A stretch of DNA of 60,057 bases, counting the filler, from Bipalium vagum (taxonomy: Eukaryota): assembly GCA_037834085.1 (NCBI GenBank). It is 3 parts of 3 records of this genome, joined end to end, with 100 filler letters (N's around TTAATTAATTAA, not from the genome) between each part and the next. Parts side by side here need not be neighbours in the genome. Positions count along the whole stretch, not along the records: positions 35,374 to 60,057 come from JBBMKC010199164.1; 2 more parts are not named here. One strand, 5' to 3'. Shown here in pieces: positions 35,374-55,000 of this stretch. The position numbers and the translations under genes are program-made. Position 1 is the first letter of the stretch; every line of letters starts with the position of its first letter. The notes under the pieces were generated by a model. The model did no database searches. It had not been told where the DNA came from and was given only the letters and a program-made list of their open reading frames with translations.

Positions 35374-36744
35374 TTTGCAGATAATTCAGAAGAAAGTTAA
35401 AATTGACTGAAGAAGATCTGAATGAAAAGATCGAAACATGTTTCAAGATAAATAAAGTATTCAAGATTGAATAAAATATTGTGTTTTCGTAAAAATTCGT
35501 TAAATGGGGTTTATTTAAAAAATAAAAGAGGGCTGAAAAGTAAATGAACAATAACATGAACAAGGAAATTATATTGTTAATGACAAATAACATATACAGT
35601 AAATGGAAGACGGCAATTCTCATTAAATGATGTTTGTGAAATGATTTCCTTTAACAGATAACGTTAAATCAATTATTTGTGGGAAGGACAATTTTTTAGT
35701 TTGCAGCTCTTCGTAGTAAAGCGGAAAAATTCTTCGTTTACTCATTTTTCTATTTCAATTAGATTTTTCTTTTTTGTAATGAAAAAACCTTGCATTAAGA
35801 GTATCCCAAAACCAATATAAACTGGTGTGAAGTTTTAGCATGTTATCCTTATGTTGCAAAATACAACCAAAAAATTCAACTTGTTTATCATAGTAATCTG
35901 GTTTCCATTCTTTAAGAAACTATTTTTAAAAATTTTTAACGTCCCTTCTGTTAAAGCTCATTGTACCAAGGTATTTGGAATATTAGTTTCCTCTGATAAT
36001 CTACAAATGGACGTTATAACATACATATCAGCAATTGAACATTTAATGGAGACCTAATATTCTGTGATTTTTTAATATTTATTAAAACATTTAGTGAAAT
36101 GTCAAATTCTGTCACATTATTTCAAGCACATCATCAGTACCATAGGTTGAAATGGACATTGACGGATGAACCTCACGAAATTCGTCCTTTAGACTTGTGC
36201 TACCTAATCATGCGTAAATGCTGTTAACATTTATCAATTTATAACTTACTAGTGAAAGTTTTTTTTAAAGAATTTGTTTTGTAACATCACTAACTTTTGA
36301 TCCGATTTCTCTTTAAGCAGGTCTTTGAGGGTTGAGGAATTTTGTTTATATTGTTAAAAACCTGACATTATGAAACGATAGTTGTTAATAATGACAAATC
36401 ATTCTGACAGGTTAAATGAAGTCTATCGATATACTGATTCGGTGTCTGGTCACATTTAGAATCATAGTAAATCATCGAACGATAATTTTCCCGTAAAAAT
36501 GTCATATTTTCAAAAGTTAACCATTAAAACAAAGTCCCTAATTCATACTTCTACAAATGATTCCCTCTAATTTTCTTATTGTCAGTAATAAAAAGCCGAT
36601 ATAAGAGTACCCGATTTGACAAACGTAACTATCACCCACGTATTATTAATAGGATTGAAAAGAAATTTCTCTTAGAATTTTTCCCTTGTCGTCAGGATTA
36701 GAGACACCAACTCAGTGAGTTGAGGACACATTTATAAATGGAAA

Positions 36745-42159: not shown

Positions 42160-43209
42160 TTACGAATCGGTAAATTTCGCATCTCTCTTTTCCAAAAATG
42201 CCTTCATTCCTTCTCTGCGGTCGTTCTGAAAAAATAAATACGATAAGTAACTTCGCTGCAATCATTAATCAATATTGTACTGTTGCGAACGTTCCATAGA
42301 ATATGTTCTTCTCAAAACGGAGACCTGTCTCAAGCGTCGTATTGTAGGCGGCTGTCACGGCCTGTTTAGCAGCTTTCACTGACAGGGCGGACATCTTCGA
42401 TATTTTCTCTCCCAACTTTATGGTTTCGTCGACCAACATATTGCTAGGAAACACTTTACTCACTAAACCACGAGCTAGGGCCTCTTTGGCATCGATCACA
42501 TCTCCTAGATTAAAATCAGTCAACTGAGAATTTCAAATTGAAAACATTCCCCACCTGTCAAGACCAGCTCCATGGCACGAGACTTTCCGATTACTCGCAC
42601 CAATCTTTGTGTTCCTCCTCCGCCTGGAATGGTGCCTAGCTTAATTTCTGGTTGACTGAATTTGGCATTCTCTCCCGCATAAATGATGTCACATGCCATT
42701 GCCATCTCACAACCTCCACCAAATGCATAACCGTTAACAGCGGCAATCAGGGGTTTTGCGTTTGCTCCCACCGTATCAAATTCATTAAGAAAATCAGTAC
42801 CGTACACATTACTGTACTCTCTGGTTGACATTTCTTTAATGTCTGCACCAGCTAAAATCAAATCGATTAAAAACTTCCAATCAAGAAATCTTGCCAGCAA
42901 AAGCCTTTTCACTTCCTGTTAAAATAATACATTTGATACTAGGATCATTGTTAAAATTATTCATTGCATCTTTAAGCTCTACCAATAATTCCGAACAGAG
43001 TGCATTCAAAGCTTTTGGTCTATTAAACTGAATAAATCCTATATTTTGATTTTGACCCTTTTTACTAGTAATTAAAGTATTGTAACCTGCAATAGGATAT
43101 ATGTGTGTGTATTTAAAATTTAATGTTCAATATTACTAGTTGAATAAAATAATTTATTCTTTATTACAGATTTCCATATCCGGGATTTATTTACATTCAA
43201 AAAATTCAT
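42160..43209 (-). CDS. ECHS1: Mitochondrial short-chain enoyl-CoA hydratase (crotonase), 5 exons, 283 aa
   Basis: Exons 43209-43137, 43086-42895, 42851-42555, 42504-42281 and 42225-42160 (852 nt). Motifs [82 protein letters not shown]; basic N-terminal presequence. Confidence 0.95.
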
Positions 43210-46073: not shown

Positions 46074-49000
46074 TTATGATTCGTAATAATTATTCGAAAG
46101 ACTATTTAATCTCATCAAAACGCATTCAGCATTTATTCGGGCCTCTGGATCTTCATCCCAGCATTCCGTAATGGTTTTCCACAAAGTCAGTACTTGCTAA
46201 GAATGATTATTTATTGACATTGTTAAAATAAAATACCGGAAATTTGTCCCAAAATGGATTGAATTCAGGTCTTAATATTCTATTATTAACACAATATTTC
46301 AAGTCTTCAAATGTTGGCTTTTCACCAACCAGAACCTGATAAGGAAAATGGAAATCATTTATAGTTAGTCCTGGAAATTCACATCGACTGAGAACTTCCC
46401 AAAATACAAGGGCCATGGAAAATATATCAATACGGAGAAAAGAGTTCATATTAAAATTAATTGATCCTTCCAATAATTCGGGAGCCATATAATACAGTGT
46501 TCCAACCTTCAATGAAGTCAAAAGTTATGGTAATAATCAGTAAAATAATAAATGTTTTAGGTAAAAATAAAAATCTTAATTGTCCAAAAATAAACTTTGT
46601 TTCCTCTTAATTGAAAACTTTATTTAATGTTTTTAATTTAATTGGTTTGTATTATCAGGTTATAACAATTTTTTCATGATTTTGAATATAAATTTATAAG
46701 TAGTAAAACATTTTATTTAAAAATAATCATGAAAATCAATCGATAATGTTATTTCCTTTATTTTTCGGGACCTTTTTCATTTTTTCATCAGTTTACCAAA
46801 ACCTTTTTTCCCGAAGTCGCTAGAAAAAGTTGACCACTCACTTTTGAAGGTCCTCCCCAAAAGTAATGGGCTTCATTTGGTTAGATAACGAGTGTTAAAG
46901 ATAGAAATTTGTTTGTGTAAGATCAGAGAAATATGGATGGTAAAATATTCCAATTAATAACGTGGAAAATGGTTTTCAAGAATATTTTCTATGTGCGGTC
47001 TCATGGATAAGAATGACTCCTGCTCTATTATCCAGTATTTTTTCTTTCATAATATCATTTACTCGATGCAATTTATTTATGTACATGAGCTTGTTGATTG
47101 TCTGGCTTTTCTAGATTATTCTCATTGTATGAAATATGCTCAATTTCACCAAACAGAGATCACGATTTTCTTGGAATGCAAGTCTTGTTAAATTCTGGGC
47201 TTGCTGCGCGAGCAGGAGTCAATCATTTATTTCTGTGGTTCATGTTTGTATCCAAACATGAAGCCTTAACTTTTCATAATGAATTGATGATAAAACCATT
47301 CTATGTGGTCTCGTGTTGTTTGGTGTTTGGTAAAATTTTGAAGTAGAATTTTTAAACAATTTTCCTTGAGTTTTTCGTCCAGAATATATGGCAAATAAGA
47401 ACTCAGTTTTGAATATATCATGTGATCTTAGGTGACTGAAAACTATCATTGGATTGTTGTATCTTCTCTGGACACCAATCTGTGTGCACGACCAAATCTA
47501 TAAAAAAAAGCTTTGCAAAAGCTAACTGAACTATTTATAGACAGCCTACAGTATCTATCGTATTCCCCAGACTTAGTACCAACGGGTTATCATTTCTTTA
47601 AGCATCTCGATAATTTTCTGGTGAAGGAAATTCTTGCGAATTGGAGAAGAATTGAAATGGATATCTCCGACTTCATCACTTCTAGAAAACTATATTTTAC
47701 ATAGATGATATTGAAAACCTGCTAACTCGTTGGGACAAATATATTGGGTGCAACGGTGGGTATTTTAATTGAATAAAATCTTTTAATACGTTCATTATAT
47801 TATATAATCGGACATTTCAAATCACATAGCCTATTTGGTGCAATCCAAAACCTCGTGGGCTACGTAAGAGAAGGAAAGAATAATTCAACCAAATTTATTT
47901 TAATACAAGTCTAATATGAAACAAGAAAATTTAATCACTTGATTAATTTTCTAAATAAGAACCTTGATTGTCAATGCATTTTACCACCAGAGTGCTAGTT
48001 CATGAAAATGAGCTTGCGACAGTGAGTGAAAATATTGTTCGACTTGGCTTTTTAGCTCATGTTGATTCTTAAAAAGTTTACTACGTAAATTCTTTTTAAG
48101 ATGACCAAATAAAAAAATATCTGATGACACCAAATCGGGGCTATATGCTAGTTGGTTGGGTTGAACAATATTCAAATAAATATGCTTCTTTATCTTTTCA
48201 AATTTCTGTTAGAATCCATCCACTATTCTTTGAAAAAACAGAAGTCTTCCTCGACGAAATTCTGCTATCCATTTGTAAATAAAAGCTTTTTGATGGATTT
48301 CTTTTTAAAAAACGTGACTTAATTCATCAGCTATTTCCTTCCCATTTATGTTTTTCTTGAGCAAGTATTTAATTTTAGTACGAACCAGTTGAATCCATTA
48401 TTTAACAAAAACTTGGAAATAGAATTTAGAAGATTTGCCAATTTTACACTAACACAACTGAACATTAAAACAAATATTTTTCATAACCATCAGTTGTTGC
48501 AGTAAATCCATGACACTTTCAGTAAAATATAATCACCTAACGACATTAAGTCCACAAGGTTTGGATCGCATCACGTAATATGTAAACATATATAATATTA
48601 CCCTAAAATCATGTGTATAACACGCGTGTTATACAAGAAAAAAACTAAGTATTTTTGAAAAATTATATCAGCGTGTTATACACAGGTGCGTGTTATACAA
48701 CAAAAAAATAAGTAATAAGTAATAAGATTCAGATAAGTAGCCTTCATTTATTTCTTCGTTAGGTTTTATAATTTTACTTTATAAAAGCCATTTTGAATGC
48801 AACTTTTTGTTACTAATGACCATGATTCAACAATCCACTTCCAACAATATCTTCCACTCTCTAATTGAGGCTTCATTAATTCATTCTTCATTGTAAATCC
48901 GCCCTGCTTCTCGATTGCCGTGATTTTCTGCATATTTAACTGAAATATACATTTACAACCATATTTCAAAAACATATATCAACCCATTTCTAGCTTTTTT

Positions 49001-52000
49001 AAGGTTGAATATGTTTCTTTGTTTCCATGTTTAACGAATAATGTTAATTATTTTAAGAATTCTAAAAAGTTAGACTAATTTGAAAATGAAACAAACATAT
49101 ATAATATTAAAACAAATATGCGTGTTATACACAGGTGCGCATTATAAACGGGATTTTAGGGTAAATGATACTTATATTTTAAAAAAATTGTGATGAATTT
49201 TGGACAAAAGCGTAAAATCCATGAAATAAACCACAGTCTTCTGTATGAGTCCTCCAAGATAGATGAATATTAATAAAAGCTGTTCGTAATCAAAGCACTT
49301 CAAAGTATGTAGTTACTTGTTTTTCAGAAAAATTGAATATCACAACATTGAGTCTAGGGGTTCATATATAAAGGTTAATTCTAAATAATACACAGGCTTT
49401 TGTTTGCCAGAAGATTTTGGAGAAAAAAGAAAACAATTGAAGACATTCTCACACATTTCACAGTAAATAGCTTTTTGAATTCTCAAAACTTGTACTTATG
49501 AGACATCTGACGTAGTTCTGATTTGACTTCTTTTTATTCTCTATGTGAAAAACGATTTTTAATATCAGACAATTCTATTGATGAGTTCAAAACACGTTTT
49601 CAAAATATGTTTTTCTATGACCAGTATTTTGAAAATTGATTCACCGCAAATGAAAAAAAATTTATTGGGAATACAATCTCAGATTTCTGACTGCATAGAA
49701 TTGACAGATTACTGAAAACACAAACTACTGTAACAAATCTTTCTAAAAATTGATAATGAAGTATTATGTAAGCTGAAGGTGAAACATTTTTTTATTTGAC
49801 ACTACTACAGCGCAGACCTAAAATATTTCTGATGATTATAAGAAGTAAAATGCTGATTAAGATGGTTTGGGAACCATCTTAATTACTCCAATATCAACAA
49901 GTTGCTGACTGTACAGGGTGTCCCATAAGTTCCGTGGAAAGTAAACTTAAATATCTTTCATTAAATTTCTATTTATATAATATTAAAGTATGTAAGTCTA
50001 AGTTTTTTTTAATATTTTAAAATTAGATTTAGCAAATGCCGCTTGATTTGAAGTTAAGAATCAAAATTGTACTTTTAATGGTCAAATTCAACTCAATTTC
50101 TGCTGTTAACGGAAATTAAATGCCGAATTTGGGAAAACCTCACCAATTGAAAGTGCTAAAAGAGATACTTTTCATCGTTTTTGTGAGATTGGCTCGGTGG
50201 AAGATTGTGAACGTTCTGGAAGACCAAGGCTAATAACTAAAGATGAAGTTCAGAAAATGAGTGAAATTATTGACCCACAATACAGTGTTAGATCTGTTGC
50301 AACCACCTGCTTCATTTCGCGAACAGCAGCCCATCGAATTATGAGAGAACAGTTATCATTGAAACCCTTTAAGGTCCATTTCACGCAGGAATTAAATGAA
50401 GAGGATTTGCAAGACAGAGTTGAGATGTGCAAAAGCCTGGTCCCAATGTTAGAAAATGTGGATATTCAGGTGTTAGTGAAAATTAGACGGAGATACCGGG
50501 ATTCGAACCCGGGACCTTCACATGCGCATGCACTGCTCTGACCGCTGAGCTACATCCCCCGACTAACTTTCAATTTATCTCACATCAGGAAAATATTTTC
50601 TTTTCATATGAAGCAACGTTTTACCTAAAAGGATTAGTAAATAAACATAACGTCAGATATTAGTCAGAAAGTAATCCACATGTTACTTTTGAAACTGCTA
50701 GAAAATCCTAGAAGGTAAATGTTTGGTGTGCTTGGCAAAAAATTAAATTATCGGTCCGTATTTCTTTGAAGTTGAGACTGTTAATGGCCAAAATTATCTA
50801 TCAATGCTTCAAGACTATTTTATGTTTGAAGTGAGAAAAATGTACAAAGTACGGTCTCTGGTATTTCTCTCCTGCGCATTTTTCACCAAGTGTACGACGG
50901 TATCTTGACGCTCATTTTCCGAACAGGTGGATTGGAAGAGATGGTTCAATTCGATGGGCTCCACTTTCACCAGATTTAACTCCTCTTGACTTCTATTTAT
51001 GGGGCCATTTAAAGAATAAGATATAAAAATCTGAAATCAAAAATATTGACGACTTGAAAACAAAAATCACCGAAGAAATAAAAATTGTTATCACAGAAAC
51101 TTTGAATAGCGTATTTTTAAATATTGTAAAAAGGATGAATTTATGGATATCAGTTAATGGTAGTCATTTCGAACAATTGTTGTAAATATTCTTATATGAA
51201 ATAAAAATTAAAAAAATTGTCTTTAATTTTATAAAGCAAGCGATTAAATATCTCAATCTTCTTTAGAAATATTTAAGTTTACGTTCTTCGGGGACTAATG
51301 GGACACACTGTATTAATCTTTGAAATTATGAAGAGCAGCCGGTCAGACTTAAAATCACTACTTTTCAGTATATATCTAGAATCTTGAGACACATCTTTCA
51401 AGACTTAATAGAAGAAAATTATATTTTATATAATATTGACCAACCGTGCTATATATGGATAAAAAAGTTACAAGAATAATGGTAGGTTATCTAGTCACAA
51501 TTTTGTTTTTAATTCTTACCCATTTCAATTTTATGTTCAATTGAGGATTAATGTCTTCCATAAACCATGGATAAGGGATTTCTAATGCTTAGATCTCCTA
51601 TACTTTACAAAAGATTGACAAGGATGAGTTGAATGTTGAAGTTCATTTCTAGATAAAAATTAGGACTCGCAGAACATTTACTATCGATTATTAATTTATG
51701 TTATATTATATTATTTAATCAATAAAAAATTGATTCTGGATTTAAAGATAACCAATATATTATTAAAATTGATTTTTAAAGGAATAACAGAAAAATATAA
51801 TAAAAATATATAATTACAATTAAAAAAACATCTAAATTATCATTTTAAATTAATTCTTTTAAATATTTAAAGTGAAAAATAACAAATTTATTTACCCTAT
51901 TATTGAATGCGCTTCTGTAGTTTCTTTGGCATACTGCTAAACCGAAATCAGCGATGCAAGCCGTTAAATTAGATTTCAATAAAATATTTTTGGATTTAAT

Positions 52001-55000
52001 ATCACGATGCGCTATCGGGGAATCCTCATGATCAGAGAAGCAGTGCAAATGACGCAGTCCACCAGCGATATCTTGACAAATTTTAAGAAGAGTTGTCCAT
52101 GAAACAGTGTTATTCTTTAGGTACTCCCATAAACTCCCTAACGGGTGATATTCTACTACCAGCCATAATTCTAAATTCGAGTTTTGGTCGACCTAGACGT
52201 TTTACAAGATACTTATTATGAAGTTAGGAGGTTAGTTGAAAATATATAATGTTTTATCGTAATTGCATTAATTTTTTATAATTTTGATGAAGTTTTAAAC
52301 AAATTTAAATTTATATAAAATATTTTTAATTGTGCTTAATCTTAGGTAACCAATAAAGTTCGCGCGGTTTTCCTGATACATCCTATAATGATGTTTTTTG
52401 ATATGTATTGTTTATATTCTGTTAATTGGTTTAGGTAATATTTTTTCTTTGAATTGATTATAAAAATTTAGAAATACATGCTTAAAACGTTCAATTACAT
52501 AAATCAAAATGTAAAAAATGTAAATAAAAAAGTACTAATTCCAAGTTCCTTACTCTCATATTACAATCTTGGAACTAAAATATCGAAACTGTGCGAAGGA
52601 CGAAAGATATTTATGACTTTTGGATATGATGCTATAAGCAATCGGATAGTACAGAAGTGGTTTCAGAAATCTTTCTCGGGGTGTTTACGGTTAACCGAAA
52701 AAAGCACATTCTCGAAGACAATAGGTCATTGATAACGACAATCTCAAAGAGATGGTGTAGGAAAATTCCAGTACCACTGAGAACATGCAGTAAAGTTCAG
52801 TTCGAGCGATAAAACAATTCAAGAGCTGAAGAAGAAAAAGGGTATTAATCAAATGGGTTCTACATGATTTAACAGAATCCATCAAAATAAATCGCTTTTT
52901 CATGTTTTCAACAAACTTCCCAAGATATCAAATTAAGTCCTTTCTAGATCGATTGTTAACCTGCGATGATTATCTCAATGATTAATATTGTATTTGTGTT
53001 TTTTAATAAATCTTTATATCTTTTTTTATTAAAAATCTCACAAAAGTACCTAATAATTGTAATTTTCTTAAAGTAAAATGTTATAGGAAGAAAAAATATA
53101 TTGCAAAGAAATAAGAAAATTTGATTTTTCATAATATTAATGATTTTCAAAAACCTTTAAACTACTTCAATTAATTCTCAAAATTTTTTATTTTATTAAT
53201 TTCTTTTTGATTCATAAAAAATTTGATTTCCTATGAGTATCAAGAGAATATAATAAAAACATTCAGATTCCTTTTCCTCATTAAAATGGGTTTAGAACAA
53301 AGTACATAAATTATATTAAAAATCAAAATTGAAGATTTTCTTAAAACCAGCACCAAGGATCGCTTAATATCCTACGTCAAAGTAAGTAATTTGCTATCTT
53401 AAGATATAGTTCACTAGTGTTCCGAACGTTTAAGAAGTCCTTTTATTGGAAGTTTTTACACTTTTTTATTAATATGAAACCATTTCATAACACTTAGATC
53501 GTAAATTTACTGACCCCTTCACTTTTGTCAATAACTGGTTTCAAAATAATTGAATCAAAACGACTACAATAAAAATGTTATTCTATTAACAAAGATACAC
53601 AATGGTGATCACACATTAAAAAATCTCAAATGTAGAAACGTTGACTCCCGCCGCATAAAAACGGGCATAACCATAAATATTAAAAATATAACCAATAAGT
53701 TTTCTTGTAAAATTTTTTTCTTCCGATAAATATCCTTCTGATACAAATGAAATAATAAAACAAAATACTGCTAAATATTTTGTAGCCGTCCATTGAGAAC
53801 TGCTTTTTATACTGATCAGACGACTATTCAGTCTTAGATCAGTATTCTTAATTGGGAATATCAATTCCCTTTATAGTCACTTAGTCATAAATCTGTCCCT
53901 AATTGCGGACCATGATCTAATCTTGACAATTCAATAATCACAGTTGACAAGATTAAATCATTTAATGATAAAAATTATTATTAATTATTCTAGACCTTCA
54001 AAAAATAATTCAAATTGTTAAAGGGATGTGCCCTTGGCTAACCCAACAAATTTAAAAAACATAACTCACTTGAATTTGTTACCAGAACTTATTTTTCTAT
54101 GATTAGAATAGATCCATAAGTTAGAATTCTTACATTTTTCAAAAAATTATTTTTATCTGTTTTTTTATTCTTCGCAACCAACAAAAGTTTCTGTCGATTT
54201 TTGGTCATATTGTCAACGAAACTTAATTCATCATTAACTGTCTACATTTCTCTGTTTTCATTGTTAGAGCTGCTTACTATCACGCCAGGCTTAAAAGCAA
54301 TATGCCAAGTTGATAATTCTCTGACTTACTAAAGAATTCTTGAAAACCTTGAATGATTTCTTTTTAATACAATAAAAATAGGTTGGCCTGATTTTTTTGC
54401 AGACACTAAAATTTTTGTGGATCTTTTCCAATAGTTTTTTCAGTTCTTCAATTTTTGGTAAAGTAATAAAATGATACCTCCAATGTCAAATCCCATTCGC
54501 AGATTTGCCTTTTGACAAAACAATCTGAATTCGTTCATCAACTGAAGGTAGGACAGTCATTGTATGATTAATAGGCTGAATGGATTATTATGCATTTTAT
54601 CCATATAAACAAATTATCAGTTTATTGTTTTAATTATTTGAAAATTGAAATGAATCGAAACACAATGGTTTGATAACGAGGACATTAAACTAATTGGACC
54701 ACTGCCGGGAAACTCGCCTGACCTAAACGTTATGGAAAATATTAAAGTATAAAGTGGCACAACATTATCCATCACTCAGTTGCAAGAAATTTTCAAAACA
54801 GTATGAGATTCATAAATGTCATCATCTCACTTAGATTCTCTAGTCTCTTCAATTCATAAGAGGATACATGCAAGTATTGAATCCAAGGGGCATCATACAA
54901 AGTACTGAATATTTAATATGTAAACACAATCATTTTAAATTCTTGTATGACCATTTATCCTATGTCTGTTTCCTTTTATCTATTCAAAACTATATATAAG

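Follow-up and report, generated by a model that had tools for sequence, protein, structure and literature searches.

Helenus elements are TRIMs with tRNA-like LTRs (Kojima 2024, PMC10886601). Their LTRs are 104-323 bp long, with many families at 104-123 bp, and many are known solely as solo LTRs; short examples are Helenus-2_TeGr (104 bp), Helenus-9_PSt (112 bp) and Helenus-4/5_PiIm (117 bp) (PMC10886601). A short Helenus LTR consists of TGT, a short leader, a tRNA-like core, a run of four to five T's and a final 8-20 nt ending in ACA, and the published LTRs have imperfect terminal inverted repeats of 6-12 nt. The tRNA part is non-functional in most of them. The target-site duplication (TSD) is 4 bp in all described animal families and 5 bp in the fungal and plant ones; six animal phyla are listed, Platyhelminthes not among them, and the largest published family has 5575 LTRs. 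A first-pass annotation of the locus described here had pointed to the tRNA-like LTRs of Helenus and to the 4-bp TSDs of its animal families, and both statements are correct.

SINEs have their 5' end close to the Pol III start, end in a LINE-related or simple-repeat tail and have variable TSDs. Programs that search for tRNAs take the Sm-alpha-related Gln-tRNA SINEs of Schistosoma mansoni for tRNA genes. Ginger1 and Ginger2-TDD combine TGTNR termini with an integrase-type DDE enzyme and short fixed TSDs (Bao et al. 2010, PMC2836005); TDD-4/5 duplicate 5 bp of target, while metazoan Ginger elements have TIRs of 40-270 bp and 4-bp TSDs at CCGG/CCGT or RTATAY. A non-autonomous Ginger/TDD derivative with a tRNA inside is not described in that work (PMC2836005).

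In the present work, we analyse a short tRNA-bearing insertion in a stretch of 60,057 nt from Bipalium vagum (the window), of which positions 35,374 to 60,057 form one 24.7-kb piece that contains the locus.

An insertion in a decayed mariner transposon

The features at the insertion site are the following.

49912-51312, plus strand: decayed Tc1/mariner-superfamily transposon, with TIRs at 49912-49933 and 51291-51312 and TA at both ends
50466-50470, no strand: left TSD copy, TCAGG, read in the sequence and present as a single TCAGG or TCAAG in empty sites
50471-50584, minus strand: mobile element of 114 bp, in its sense 5' TGTGAG ... CTAACA 3'
50585-50589, no strand: right TSD copy, TCAGG, from the sequence and the empty sites

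The host mariner measures 1282 bp once the insertion is subtracted, has inverted ends of 22 nt and carries stops and frameshifts. Its summed depth is about 20,000, compared with about 30 in the flanks. Among the short transposase pieces, the sole Pfam match is a weak one to HTH_32 in the N-terminal part of the host (this domain was also matched in the relatives P0001 and P0002), so that the host is assigned to Tc1/mariner on the basis of its TIRs, TA ends and motifs.

On the plus strand, the site reads ...GATAT TCAGG, then TGTTAG...CTCACA, then TCAGG AAAAT..., and the target pentamer sits within GATATTCAGGAAAAT. The host reading frame gives ...NVDIQ ahead of the insert and continues with ENIFFSYEATF... 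right after the second pentamer. Beyond the pentamers, the flanking bases on the two sides no longer agree, which sets the duplication at exactly 5 bp, as read at this one copy (50471-50584).

The empty site comes from two sources. In the contigs of three sequencing runs, a joint from 50465 to 50585 omits 119 bp (114 + 5) with a 5-letter ambiguity; it is found in four contigs of X1, which is the run from the source organism itself, and in one contig each of X2 and X4. The other source is L001, a 712-nt metagenome contig reached via mariner protein homologues (only three matches were found). Its mariner, 82-84% identical to the host copy, reads GATATTCAAGAAAATATTTTC uninterrupted with the pentamer present once, and its ORF P0003 (139 aa) reads ...NVDIQENIFFSDEA... 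across the site. The paralogue at about 692-710, on which the first-pass annotation had relied, lies beyond the 24.7-kb piece and took no part in this evidence. In a contig of X3 that spans a whole copy, the flanking 5 bp do not match; De Bruijn assembly through a 114-bp repeat of such high copy number can yield chimeric contigs, and this contig was counted neither for nor against the TSD.

A 114-bp element has thus been inserted into an old mariner copy, with duplication of 5 bp of the target. The earlier description of a minus-strand insert of this length, flanked by TCAGG on both sides and lying inside a transposase, is confirmed by the sequence, the reading frame and both sources of the empty site. 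The pattern is not a chance one, since TGTKAG...CTMACA with a 4-6 bp duplication occurs only once in the 24.7-kb piece, and more than 500 X1 contigs end at the two boundaries of the element and then run into unrelated AT-rich flanks.

Anatomy and abundance of the element

Within the 114 bp, the following parts can be distinguished.

50560-50584, minus strand: leader of 25 nt, starting TGTGAG and holding TGAAAGTTAG, which is complementary to the trailer; in an LTR it would be the U3-like att end and the start of R
50488-50559, minus strand: tRNA-Ala-derived core of 72 nt (Rfam tRNA, ARAGORN)
50542-50552, minus strand: box A, TAGCTCAGCGG, which fits the Helenus LTR pattern TRGCY...YGG (PMC10886601)
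50499-50509, minus strand: box B, GGTTCGAATCC, from the sequence and the Rfam alignment
50471-50487, minus strand: trailer of 17 nt, TCTAATTTTCACTAACA, with a T4 run at 50479-50482 followed by 8 nt ending in CTAACA (U5-like att end, if an LTR)

The Rfam tRNA model matches the minus strand from 50559 to 50488 with 46.8 bits (gathering score 29, E 3e-07), and ARAGORN reports the same span as 'tRNA-???' with anticodon (cg), no normal anticodon being readable; the tRNA-Ala-like content noted earlier is well founded. The core keeps G3:U70 and intact boxes A and B, and has CGC at the anticodon position. Its anticodon arm is one base short and unpaired, with 14 unaligned positions vs 15 in the Rfam alignment. 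Judged from these sequence features, the tRNA-like part is best explained as a promoter and not as a functional tRNA, and the T4 run is a candidate Pol III terminator. All six frames of the element are closed or lack start codons.

The element at 50471-50584 has no A-rich or simple-repeat tail. Its termini, TGTGAG and TGTTAG, are imperfect inverted repeats whose match reaches inward over nearly the whole trailer: 16 of the 17 trailer bases can be aligned with the reverse-complemented leader, with one mismatch per block and one 6-nt gap, and the repeat folds as a 10-bp stem that prolongs the acceptor stem. Both the missing tail and the inverted termini had been pointed out in the first reading, and they are recovered here from the sequence and from the alignment of trailer and leader.

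Sensitive blastn and nhmmer searches of the element against the 24.7-kb piece gave no copy beyond 50471-50584, and an exact pattern of the family-specific core had no match in metagenome, genome or viral contig collections. A looser core pattern gave 73 bacterial matches in genome contigs, which are due to chance; none of them aligns to the element at E<=1e-3.

The sequencing runs give the picture of a large family. The loose ends of X1 contigs fall at 50471/50477 on one side (47 + 90 contigs) and at 50582/50584/50585 on the other (53 + 276 + 47 contigs). At a likeness threshold of 80%, the summed depth is about 10,000 times that of single-copy sequence, reaching about 310,000 over the tRNA core and roughly 110,000-200,000 over the end regions after correction. 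Among the contigs listed, the consensus beyond the X1 loose ends is AT-rich and of low agreement at both ends, where collapsed high-copy junctions, represented by few contigs, could escape notice. The family is sharp-ended, tail-less and very abundant, and its copies appear to lie at hundreds to thousands of genomic sites. The sequence and the sharp contig ends thus bear out the proposal of a mobile, tail-less unit with TG...CA ends and a 5-bp duplication that does not behave as a SINE.

The family is present in at least three related organisms besides the source (X2-X4). For Schmidtea mediterranea, just 19 tRNA pseudogenes have been predicted, which makes this species an improbable source. 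A second variant in these runs has a different trailer that again ends in CTAACA, and variants with other leaders and trailers occur among the run contigs. In one X3 contig (organism C), a purine-rich ..AAATGAGAGGGA lies directly upstream of TGTGAG; this flank resembles the PPT ends of published Helenus internal portions.

Origin of the element

We consider it somewhat better than an even chance, with a probability of roughly 55%, that these 114 bp represent a solo LTR from a non-autonomous TRIM of the Helenus / 'TRIMp3' type with a tRNA-Ala-derived Pol III promoter in its LTR. The tRNA-derived sequence has a box A (TRGCY...YGG) and a box B (GGTTC), the ends are 5' TG...CA 3' with short terminal inverted repeats, and the 114 bp fall within the 104-323 bp of Helenus LTRs (Table S1). 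The first-pass annotation had left two options side by side, a solo LTR and an integrase-mobilised mini-transposon; length and layout match the short Helenus LTRs and favour the solo LTR as the likelier of the two.

In this scenario, a two-LTR parent (LTR-PBS-short internal part-PPT-LTR) would be transcribed from boxes A and B. R would begin about 10 nt ahead of the tRNA-like part and reach as far as the T4 run, while the first ~15-18 nt of the LTR would serve as U3 and its last 8 nt as U5. An autonomous LTR element would supply in trans the RT and the DDE integrase for reverse transcription and integration of the parent RNA, the candidate helper being a BEL/Pao, Copia or Gypsy lineage that makes 5-bp duplications. 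Recombination between the LTRs would then leave a solo unit with the original duplication still around it. We found no two-LTR copy with PBS and PPT, the 24.7-kb piece holding a single copy, and that piece contains no integrase or RT ORF and no autonomous partner. Published Helenus LTRs outnumber internal parts 2- to 15-fold, so that random flanks are expected at most ends.

It is important to point out that some observations run against a solo LTR. A T4 run in the 5' LTR would require read-through; the trailer is almost entirely an inverted copy of the leader, which is longer than in most LTRs and as in a TIR transposon; and the TSD of described animal Helenus is 4 bp, compared with the 5 bp at this single copy.

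Another scenario, to which we give a rather low probability, is a MITE-like unit made up of a tRNA-Ala pseudogene and its terminator within inverted ends (TGTKAG ... TGAAARTTAG), which would have no LTR-internal-LTR form and would be mobilised at the DNA level by a DDE transposase of the integrase type, for example a Ginger/TDD-like one, with 5-bp duplications. In a wider version, which we likewise regard as unlikely, the unit would be a complete but parentless mobile element with att-like inverted ends, moved by the integrase of an LTR element or by a Ginger-like transposase. Such a unit would account for the pairing of 16 of the 17 trailer bases with the leader and for the 10-bp stem, although the score of this inverted repeat is only modestly unusual, being reached by 572 random genomic pairs and 1018 shuffles out of 20,000 each, and terminal inverted repeats of 6-12 nt are also found in published Helenus LTRs. 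A MITE would typically have such a size, sharp ends, a fixed short TSD and a very high copy number, and the X1 flanks, in the contigs listed, have no common PBS- or PPT-like neighbour; the T-run just ahead of a short terminal segment, however, is exactly the Helenus LTR layout. The element ends, TGTGA and TGTTA, conform to the TGTNR of Ginger/TDD, and TDD-4/5 give 5-bp TSDs (PMC2836005). The inverted repeat, on the other hand, is at most 25 nt long and gapped, and the TSD is the 5-bp TCAGG, so that the TIRs of 40-270 bp, the 4-bp TSDs and the CCGG or RTATAY targets of metazoan Ginger do not fit, and the unit is without a known transposase partner.

Even less probable is a larger composite repeat, whether a long LTR or a bigger transposon that ends in this unit or a tandem array that contains it, of which the 114-bp copy would be a deleted or partial form. 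The higher depth over the core than over the ends and the existence of variants with other leaders and trailers could be read in this way, but the excess over the core comes from other sequences that pass the 80% likeness, namely true tRNA genes and related tRNA-like families; moreover, both boundaries of the 50471-50584 copy are the commonest loose-end positions of the family, and the precise 119-bp gap in the empty sites means that the integrated unit is 114 bp. The least probable option, and in our view a very poor candidate, is an unusual tRNA-derived SINE, in which a Pol III transcript would be inserted through target-primed reverse transcription by a tail-independent LINE. The tRNA-derived core, whose A and B boxes are intact, the great abundance and the AT-rich animal genome would suit it, and tRNA-derived SINE families in thousands of copies are known in flatworms (the Sm-alpha-related Gln-tRNA family). 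The common 5' end, however, precedes the tRNA-like part by 25 nt and the 3' end lies 8 nt past the T4 run, and a Pol III transcript would therefore miss both termini. The 5' end at the Pol III start and the LINE-like, A-rich or simple-repeat tail of SINE2 elements are lacking here, hundreds of contigs define the two ends sharply, and the TG...CA ends are accompanied by an exact 5-bp TSD, read at one copy, in place of variable ones.

Returning to the solo LTR, its confirmation would mean that TRIMs with a Pol III promoter (Helenus) reach another animal lineage, with a family among the most abundant of this type. It would also give an animal tRNA-type family with a 5-bp-TSD partner, as opposed to the 4-bp Gypsy partners inferred so far, and such a partner would support repeated independent origins. 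If no two-LTR form exists, the element would instead represent a new route for spreading a Pol III unit via an integrase-type enzyme, and as a stand-alone unit it would be a small-RNA-gene mini-transposon of an undescribed kind. Literature searches gave no description of this element family and no tRNA-carrying MITE, and Platyhelminthes are outside the six listed phyla; the suggestion that the element is possibly undescribed holds to this extent, but the class itself was published in 2024, which makes the novelty smaller than had been assumed. In practical terms, hundreds to thousands of units in the genome and in its relatives will be taken for tRNA-Ala genes, for pseudogenes of them or for Pol III/TFIIIC sites, and masking is therefore needed in tRNA annotation.

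Comparison with known systems

With SINE2 families, such as the Sm-alpha-related Gln-tRNA family of Schistosoma mansoni, the element shares a tRNA-derived Pol III promoter and copies in the thousands; it differs from them in its 25-nt leader, its TG...CA ends, its exact 5-bp TSD and its lack of a tail. Ajax and Cassandra likewise have the Pol III promoter of a small-RNA gene within a short LTR, and Ajax (in nemerteans) has a 5-bp TSD in an animal, as here. Their promoter, however, comes from 5S rRNA and not from tRNA, and their two-LTR structure is documented.

The greatest likeness is to Helenus. Both have a tRNA-derived core with conserved A and B boxes that is unlikely to be a working tRNA, TGT...ACA ends with short imperfect inverted repeats, a unit of about 104-123 bp, and a T4-5 run followed by a short terminal segment; Helenus solo units with a fixed short TSD are common. 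The present element differs in the 5-bp TSD of this copy, compared with 4 bp in described animal Helenus, in its tRNA-Ala origin and in an inverted repeat that spans almost the whole trailer. No two-LTR copy, PBS or PPT was seen for it in the piece and contigs analysed, and its apparent copy number is at least that of the largest published family (5575 LTRs).

The insert and its target site

The element is a tRNA-Ala-like unit that interrupts a transposase gene in the part of the stretch taken from JBBMKC010199164.1 (35374-60057, G+C ca 28%), and its surroundings were annotated as follows.

Features of the element and its surroundings
42523-42912, minus: enoyl-CoA hydratase/isomerase exon (ECH_1, E 1.9e-34)
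46210-46521 and 51848-52048, minus: successive exons of a protein-kinase gene, matching Pkinase profile positions 157-194 and 117-151, respectively
49912-51312: decayed Tc1/mariner-superfamily transposon with 22-nt inverted ends (pair I6) and TA at either end
50466-50470 and 50585-50589: TCAGG pentamers, read directly from the sequence
50471-50584, minus (tRNA sense): 114-nt insert, read directly
Within the insert, minus: 25-nt leader starting TGTGAG
50559->50488, minus: 72-nt tRNA-like core (Rfam tRNA model, ARAGORN)
Within the insert, minus: 17-nt trailer, TCTAATTTTCACTAACA

The mariner and the element lie in a 5.3-kb intron between the kinase exons, whose motif HRDIKSKNILL is similar to that of a receptor Ser/Thr kinase; the tRNA sense strand of the element is that of the kinase gene. 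Elsewhere, a repeat structure of about 570 bp at 48584-49164 has 28-nt inverted ends (48598-48625 / 49137-49164, 82% complementary), an exact 17-nt direct repeat whose copies are spaced by 509 bp, and recurring GCGTGTTATACA motifs, and may be another small TIR element.

On the plus strand, the junctions read directly as ...GATAT TCAGG / TGTTAG ... CTCACA / TCAGG AAAAT..., and the repeat is exactly 5 bp because the bases beyond the two pentamers differ. The host has inverted ends beginning (TA)CAGGGTGTCCCA, measures 1282 bp without the insert and contains stops, frameshifts and dozens of positions unlike the family majority. Its transposase, read as separate natural pieces together with a natural ORF of a related metagenome contig, runs ...VPMLENVDIQ up to the insert and resumes with ENIFFSYEATFYLKGLVNKHNVRY right after the second pentamer. 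An HTH_32 match is weak in the N-terminal part of the host, while it is clear in two related mariner proteins (P0001, P0002).

Empty sites come from two sources, which stand in for the paralogue at ~692-710 named in the first-pass annotation, as that copy falls outside 35374-60057. Logan contigs of four public sequencing runs (X1-X4) were aligned to 49700-51500, and four contigs of X1, one of X2 (shorter side 136 letters) and one of X4 join 50465->50585, omitting exactly 119 bp (114 + 5) with a five-letter ambiguity. Since X1 matches the unique flanks without a single difference, it comes from the source organism or from one nearly identical to it. Schmidtea mediterranea is an improbable source, as just 19 tRNA pseudogenes have been predicted in it. 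At least three other organisms have related mariner copies (80-95% identity), and so does an ENA metagenome contig of 712 nt, L001. The mariner on L001 is 82-84% identical to the host and runs uninterrupted across the site (...GATATTCAAGAAAATATTTTC...), as does the 139-aa ORF of the contig, P0003 (...NVDIQENIFFSDEA...). The first-pass annotation had claimed a 114-bp insert between TCAGG/TCAGG; the sequence, the run joints and L001 together establish this insertion, both of its boundaries and the duplication of 5 bp.

The tRNA-like core and its family

The Rfam tRNA model covers the core end to end with 46.8 bits (gathering score 29). ARAGORN reports the identical span as 'tRNA-???' with an anticodon of only two bases, and in the Rfam alignment the anticodon arm is one base short; by direct reading, the anticodon position is CGC, within a palindrome unable to make a normal stem. 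The acceptor stem retains G3:U70, the alanine identity pair of tRNA, and both promoter boxes, A (TAGCTCAGCGG) and B (GGTTCGAATCC), are intact. Together, these features mark the core as a predicted Pol III promoter unit derived from tRNA-Ala and non-functional as a tRNA. No further tRNA-like sequences or element copies were found in 35374-60057 by tRNA and element searches, and the only TGTKAG...CTMACA pair bordered there by a 4-6 bp repeat is the element itself.

The family is abundant in X1, where summed contig depth is ca 20-47 in the unique flanks, 13,000-50,000 in the mariner (ca 500-1500 times the flanks) and 310,000 in the tRNA-like core; as summed depth is no copy number, this is to be read only as copies in the 'thousands'. 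Stronger evidence comes from the loose ends: contigs of X1 leave the stretch at 50471 (n=47) and at 50477 (n=90, unaligned letters finishing TGTTAGT), and at the other boundary at 50582 (n=53), 50584 (n=276) and 50585 (n=47). Every group continues AT-rich with an agreement of just 0.43-0.55, so the flanks are mutually unrelated. The family is thus bounded by one shared pair of sharp ends, without a tail, at several hundred distinct sites or more, which bears out the mobile, tail-less cassette proposed earlier. Among the best-supported 40 of 150 base differences none falls inside the element, despite the peak depth there, which suggests that this copy is near the family majority.

Copies also occur in other organisms. 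One contig of X3 matches 50471-50586 with 3 differences, and one of X4 matches 50471-50555 with 2 and departs exactly at 50471. A second tRNA-Ala-like variant, aligned over 50489-50539, is common to X2, X3 and X4; it has one added base in the variable region (T behind 50516), another leader (…ACAAATGAAT in sense) and another trailer (AATTTATTTGAACCTAACA in sense), and ends CTAACA/TGTTAG as in the element. The variant may belong to a sister subfamily, or the family may have arisen from it.

Mode of insertion

TG...CA ends with a short fixed duplication are a mark of DDE integrase-type insertion. This link has been restated for Gypsy, Ginger, IS3 and IS481 (PMC2836005). The termini, the duplication and the absent tail of the element speak for an insertion of this type. 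An atypical SINE is very improbable, as a leader of 25 nt separates the shared 5' end of the family from the tRNA-like part and another 8 nt separate a T4 run from the 3' end, so that a Pol III transcript would contain neither terminus; a LINE-like, A-rich or simple-repeat tail is also absent, and the TG...CA ends are bordered by a short duplication that is exact. These points agree with the non-SINE character first assigned to the element.

A stand-alone TIR mini-transposon would account for the pairing of the two ends, which weighs to some extent against an LTR: all but one of the 17 trailer bases (16) match the leader reverse complement (TGTKAG, a 6-nt gap, TGAAARTTAG; one mismatch per block) in an alignment that folds into a 10-bp stem prolonging the acceptor stem. 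However, the local inverted-repeat score is matched by 572 of 20,000 random genomic pairs and 1018 of 20,000 shuffles, so the repeat is a hint short of proof. The integrase-type DNA transposons described so far fit poorly: Ginger elements have TIRs of 40-270 bp and, in metazoans, 4-bp target-site duplications (TSDs) at CCGG or RTATAY, in contrast to the 5 bp found here, and among such transposons 5-bp TSDs are known only from the Dictyostelium elements TDD-4/5 (PMC2836005). We consider a stand-alone mini-transposon unlikely. Membership in a larger composite repeat seems less probable again, and the remainder falls to something beyond the readings considered.

Comparison with Helenus elements

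We favor, with a probability of roughly 0.55, the reading of the element as a putative solo LTR of a Helenus-type (TRIMp3) element, that is, a miniature LTR retrotransposon with tRNA-like LTRs, with a partner that makes 5-bp TSDs. Helenus was described by Kojima 2024 (PMC10886601), with LTRs of 104-323 bp (many families 104-123 bp) and many families represented by solo LTRs only, their internal part given as 'n.d.' (Table S1). In several published consensus sequences, the short LTRs consist of TGT with a short leader, a tRNA-like core, a T4-5 run and 8-20 nt ending ACA, with imperfect 6-12 nt inverted repeats at both ends. The element has the identical layout and a typical length.

Published Helenus LTRs exceed the internal parts 2- to 15-fold (PMC10886601), and mostly random flanks are therefore expected. 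The X1 loose ends listed are ordered by contig number and include no LTR-internal junctions; collapsed, such junctions would be few contigs and may be unlisted, so their absence there is evidence neither way.

One X3 contig with a copy of the element has on one side 29 nt matching mariner positions 49982-50010 and on the other a purine-rich, PPT-like stretch (..AAATGAGAGGGA) directly upstream of TGTGAG. It may be an independent insertion in another mariner copy or a piece of a two-LTR element, and is possibly chimeric. The stretch is similar to the 3' ends of published Helenus internal portions, which are purine-rich as well, and as a single case it is only a lead.

Helenus is known from six animal phyla, Platyhelminthes not among them, and its TSDs are 5 bp in fungi and a plant and 4 bp in animals, in agreement with the 4 bp that the first-pass annotation had given for animals; Ajax, related nemertean elements, carry 5S and have 5-bp TSDs (PMC10886601). 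The element would represent a new kind only if a two-LTR form proves absent genome-wide. The class is already known, and the element would add to it a member with a tRNA-Ala origin, very high abundance and, in this copy, a 5-bp TSD in an animal, against 4 bp in the described animal Helenus.
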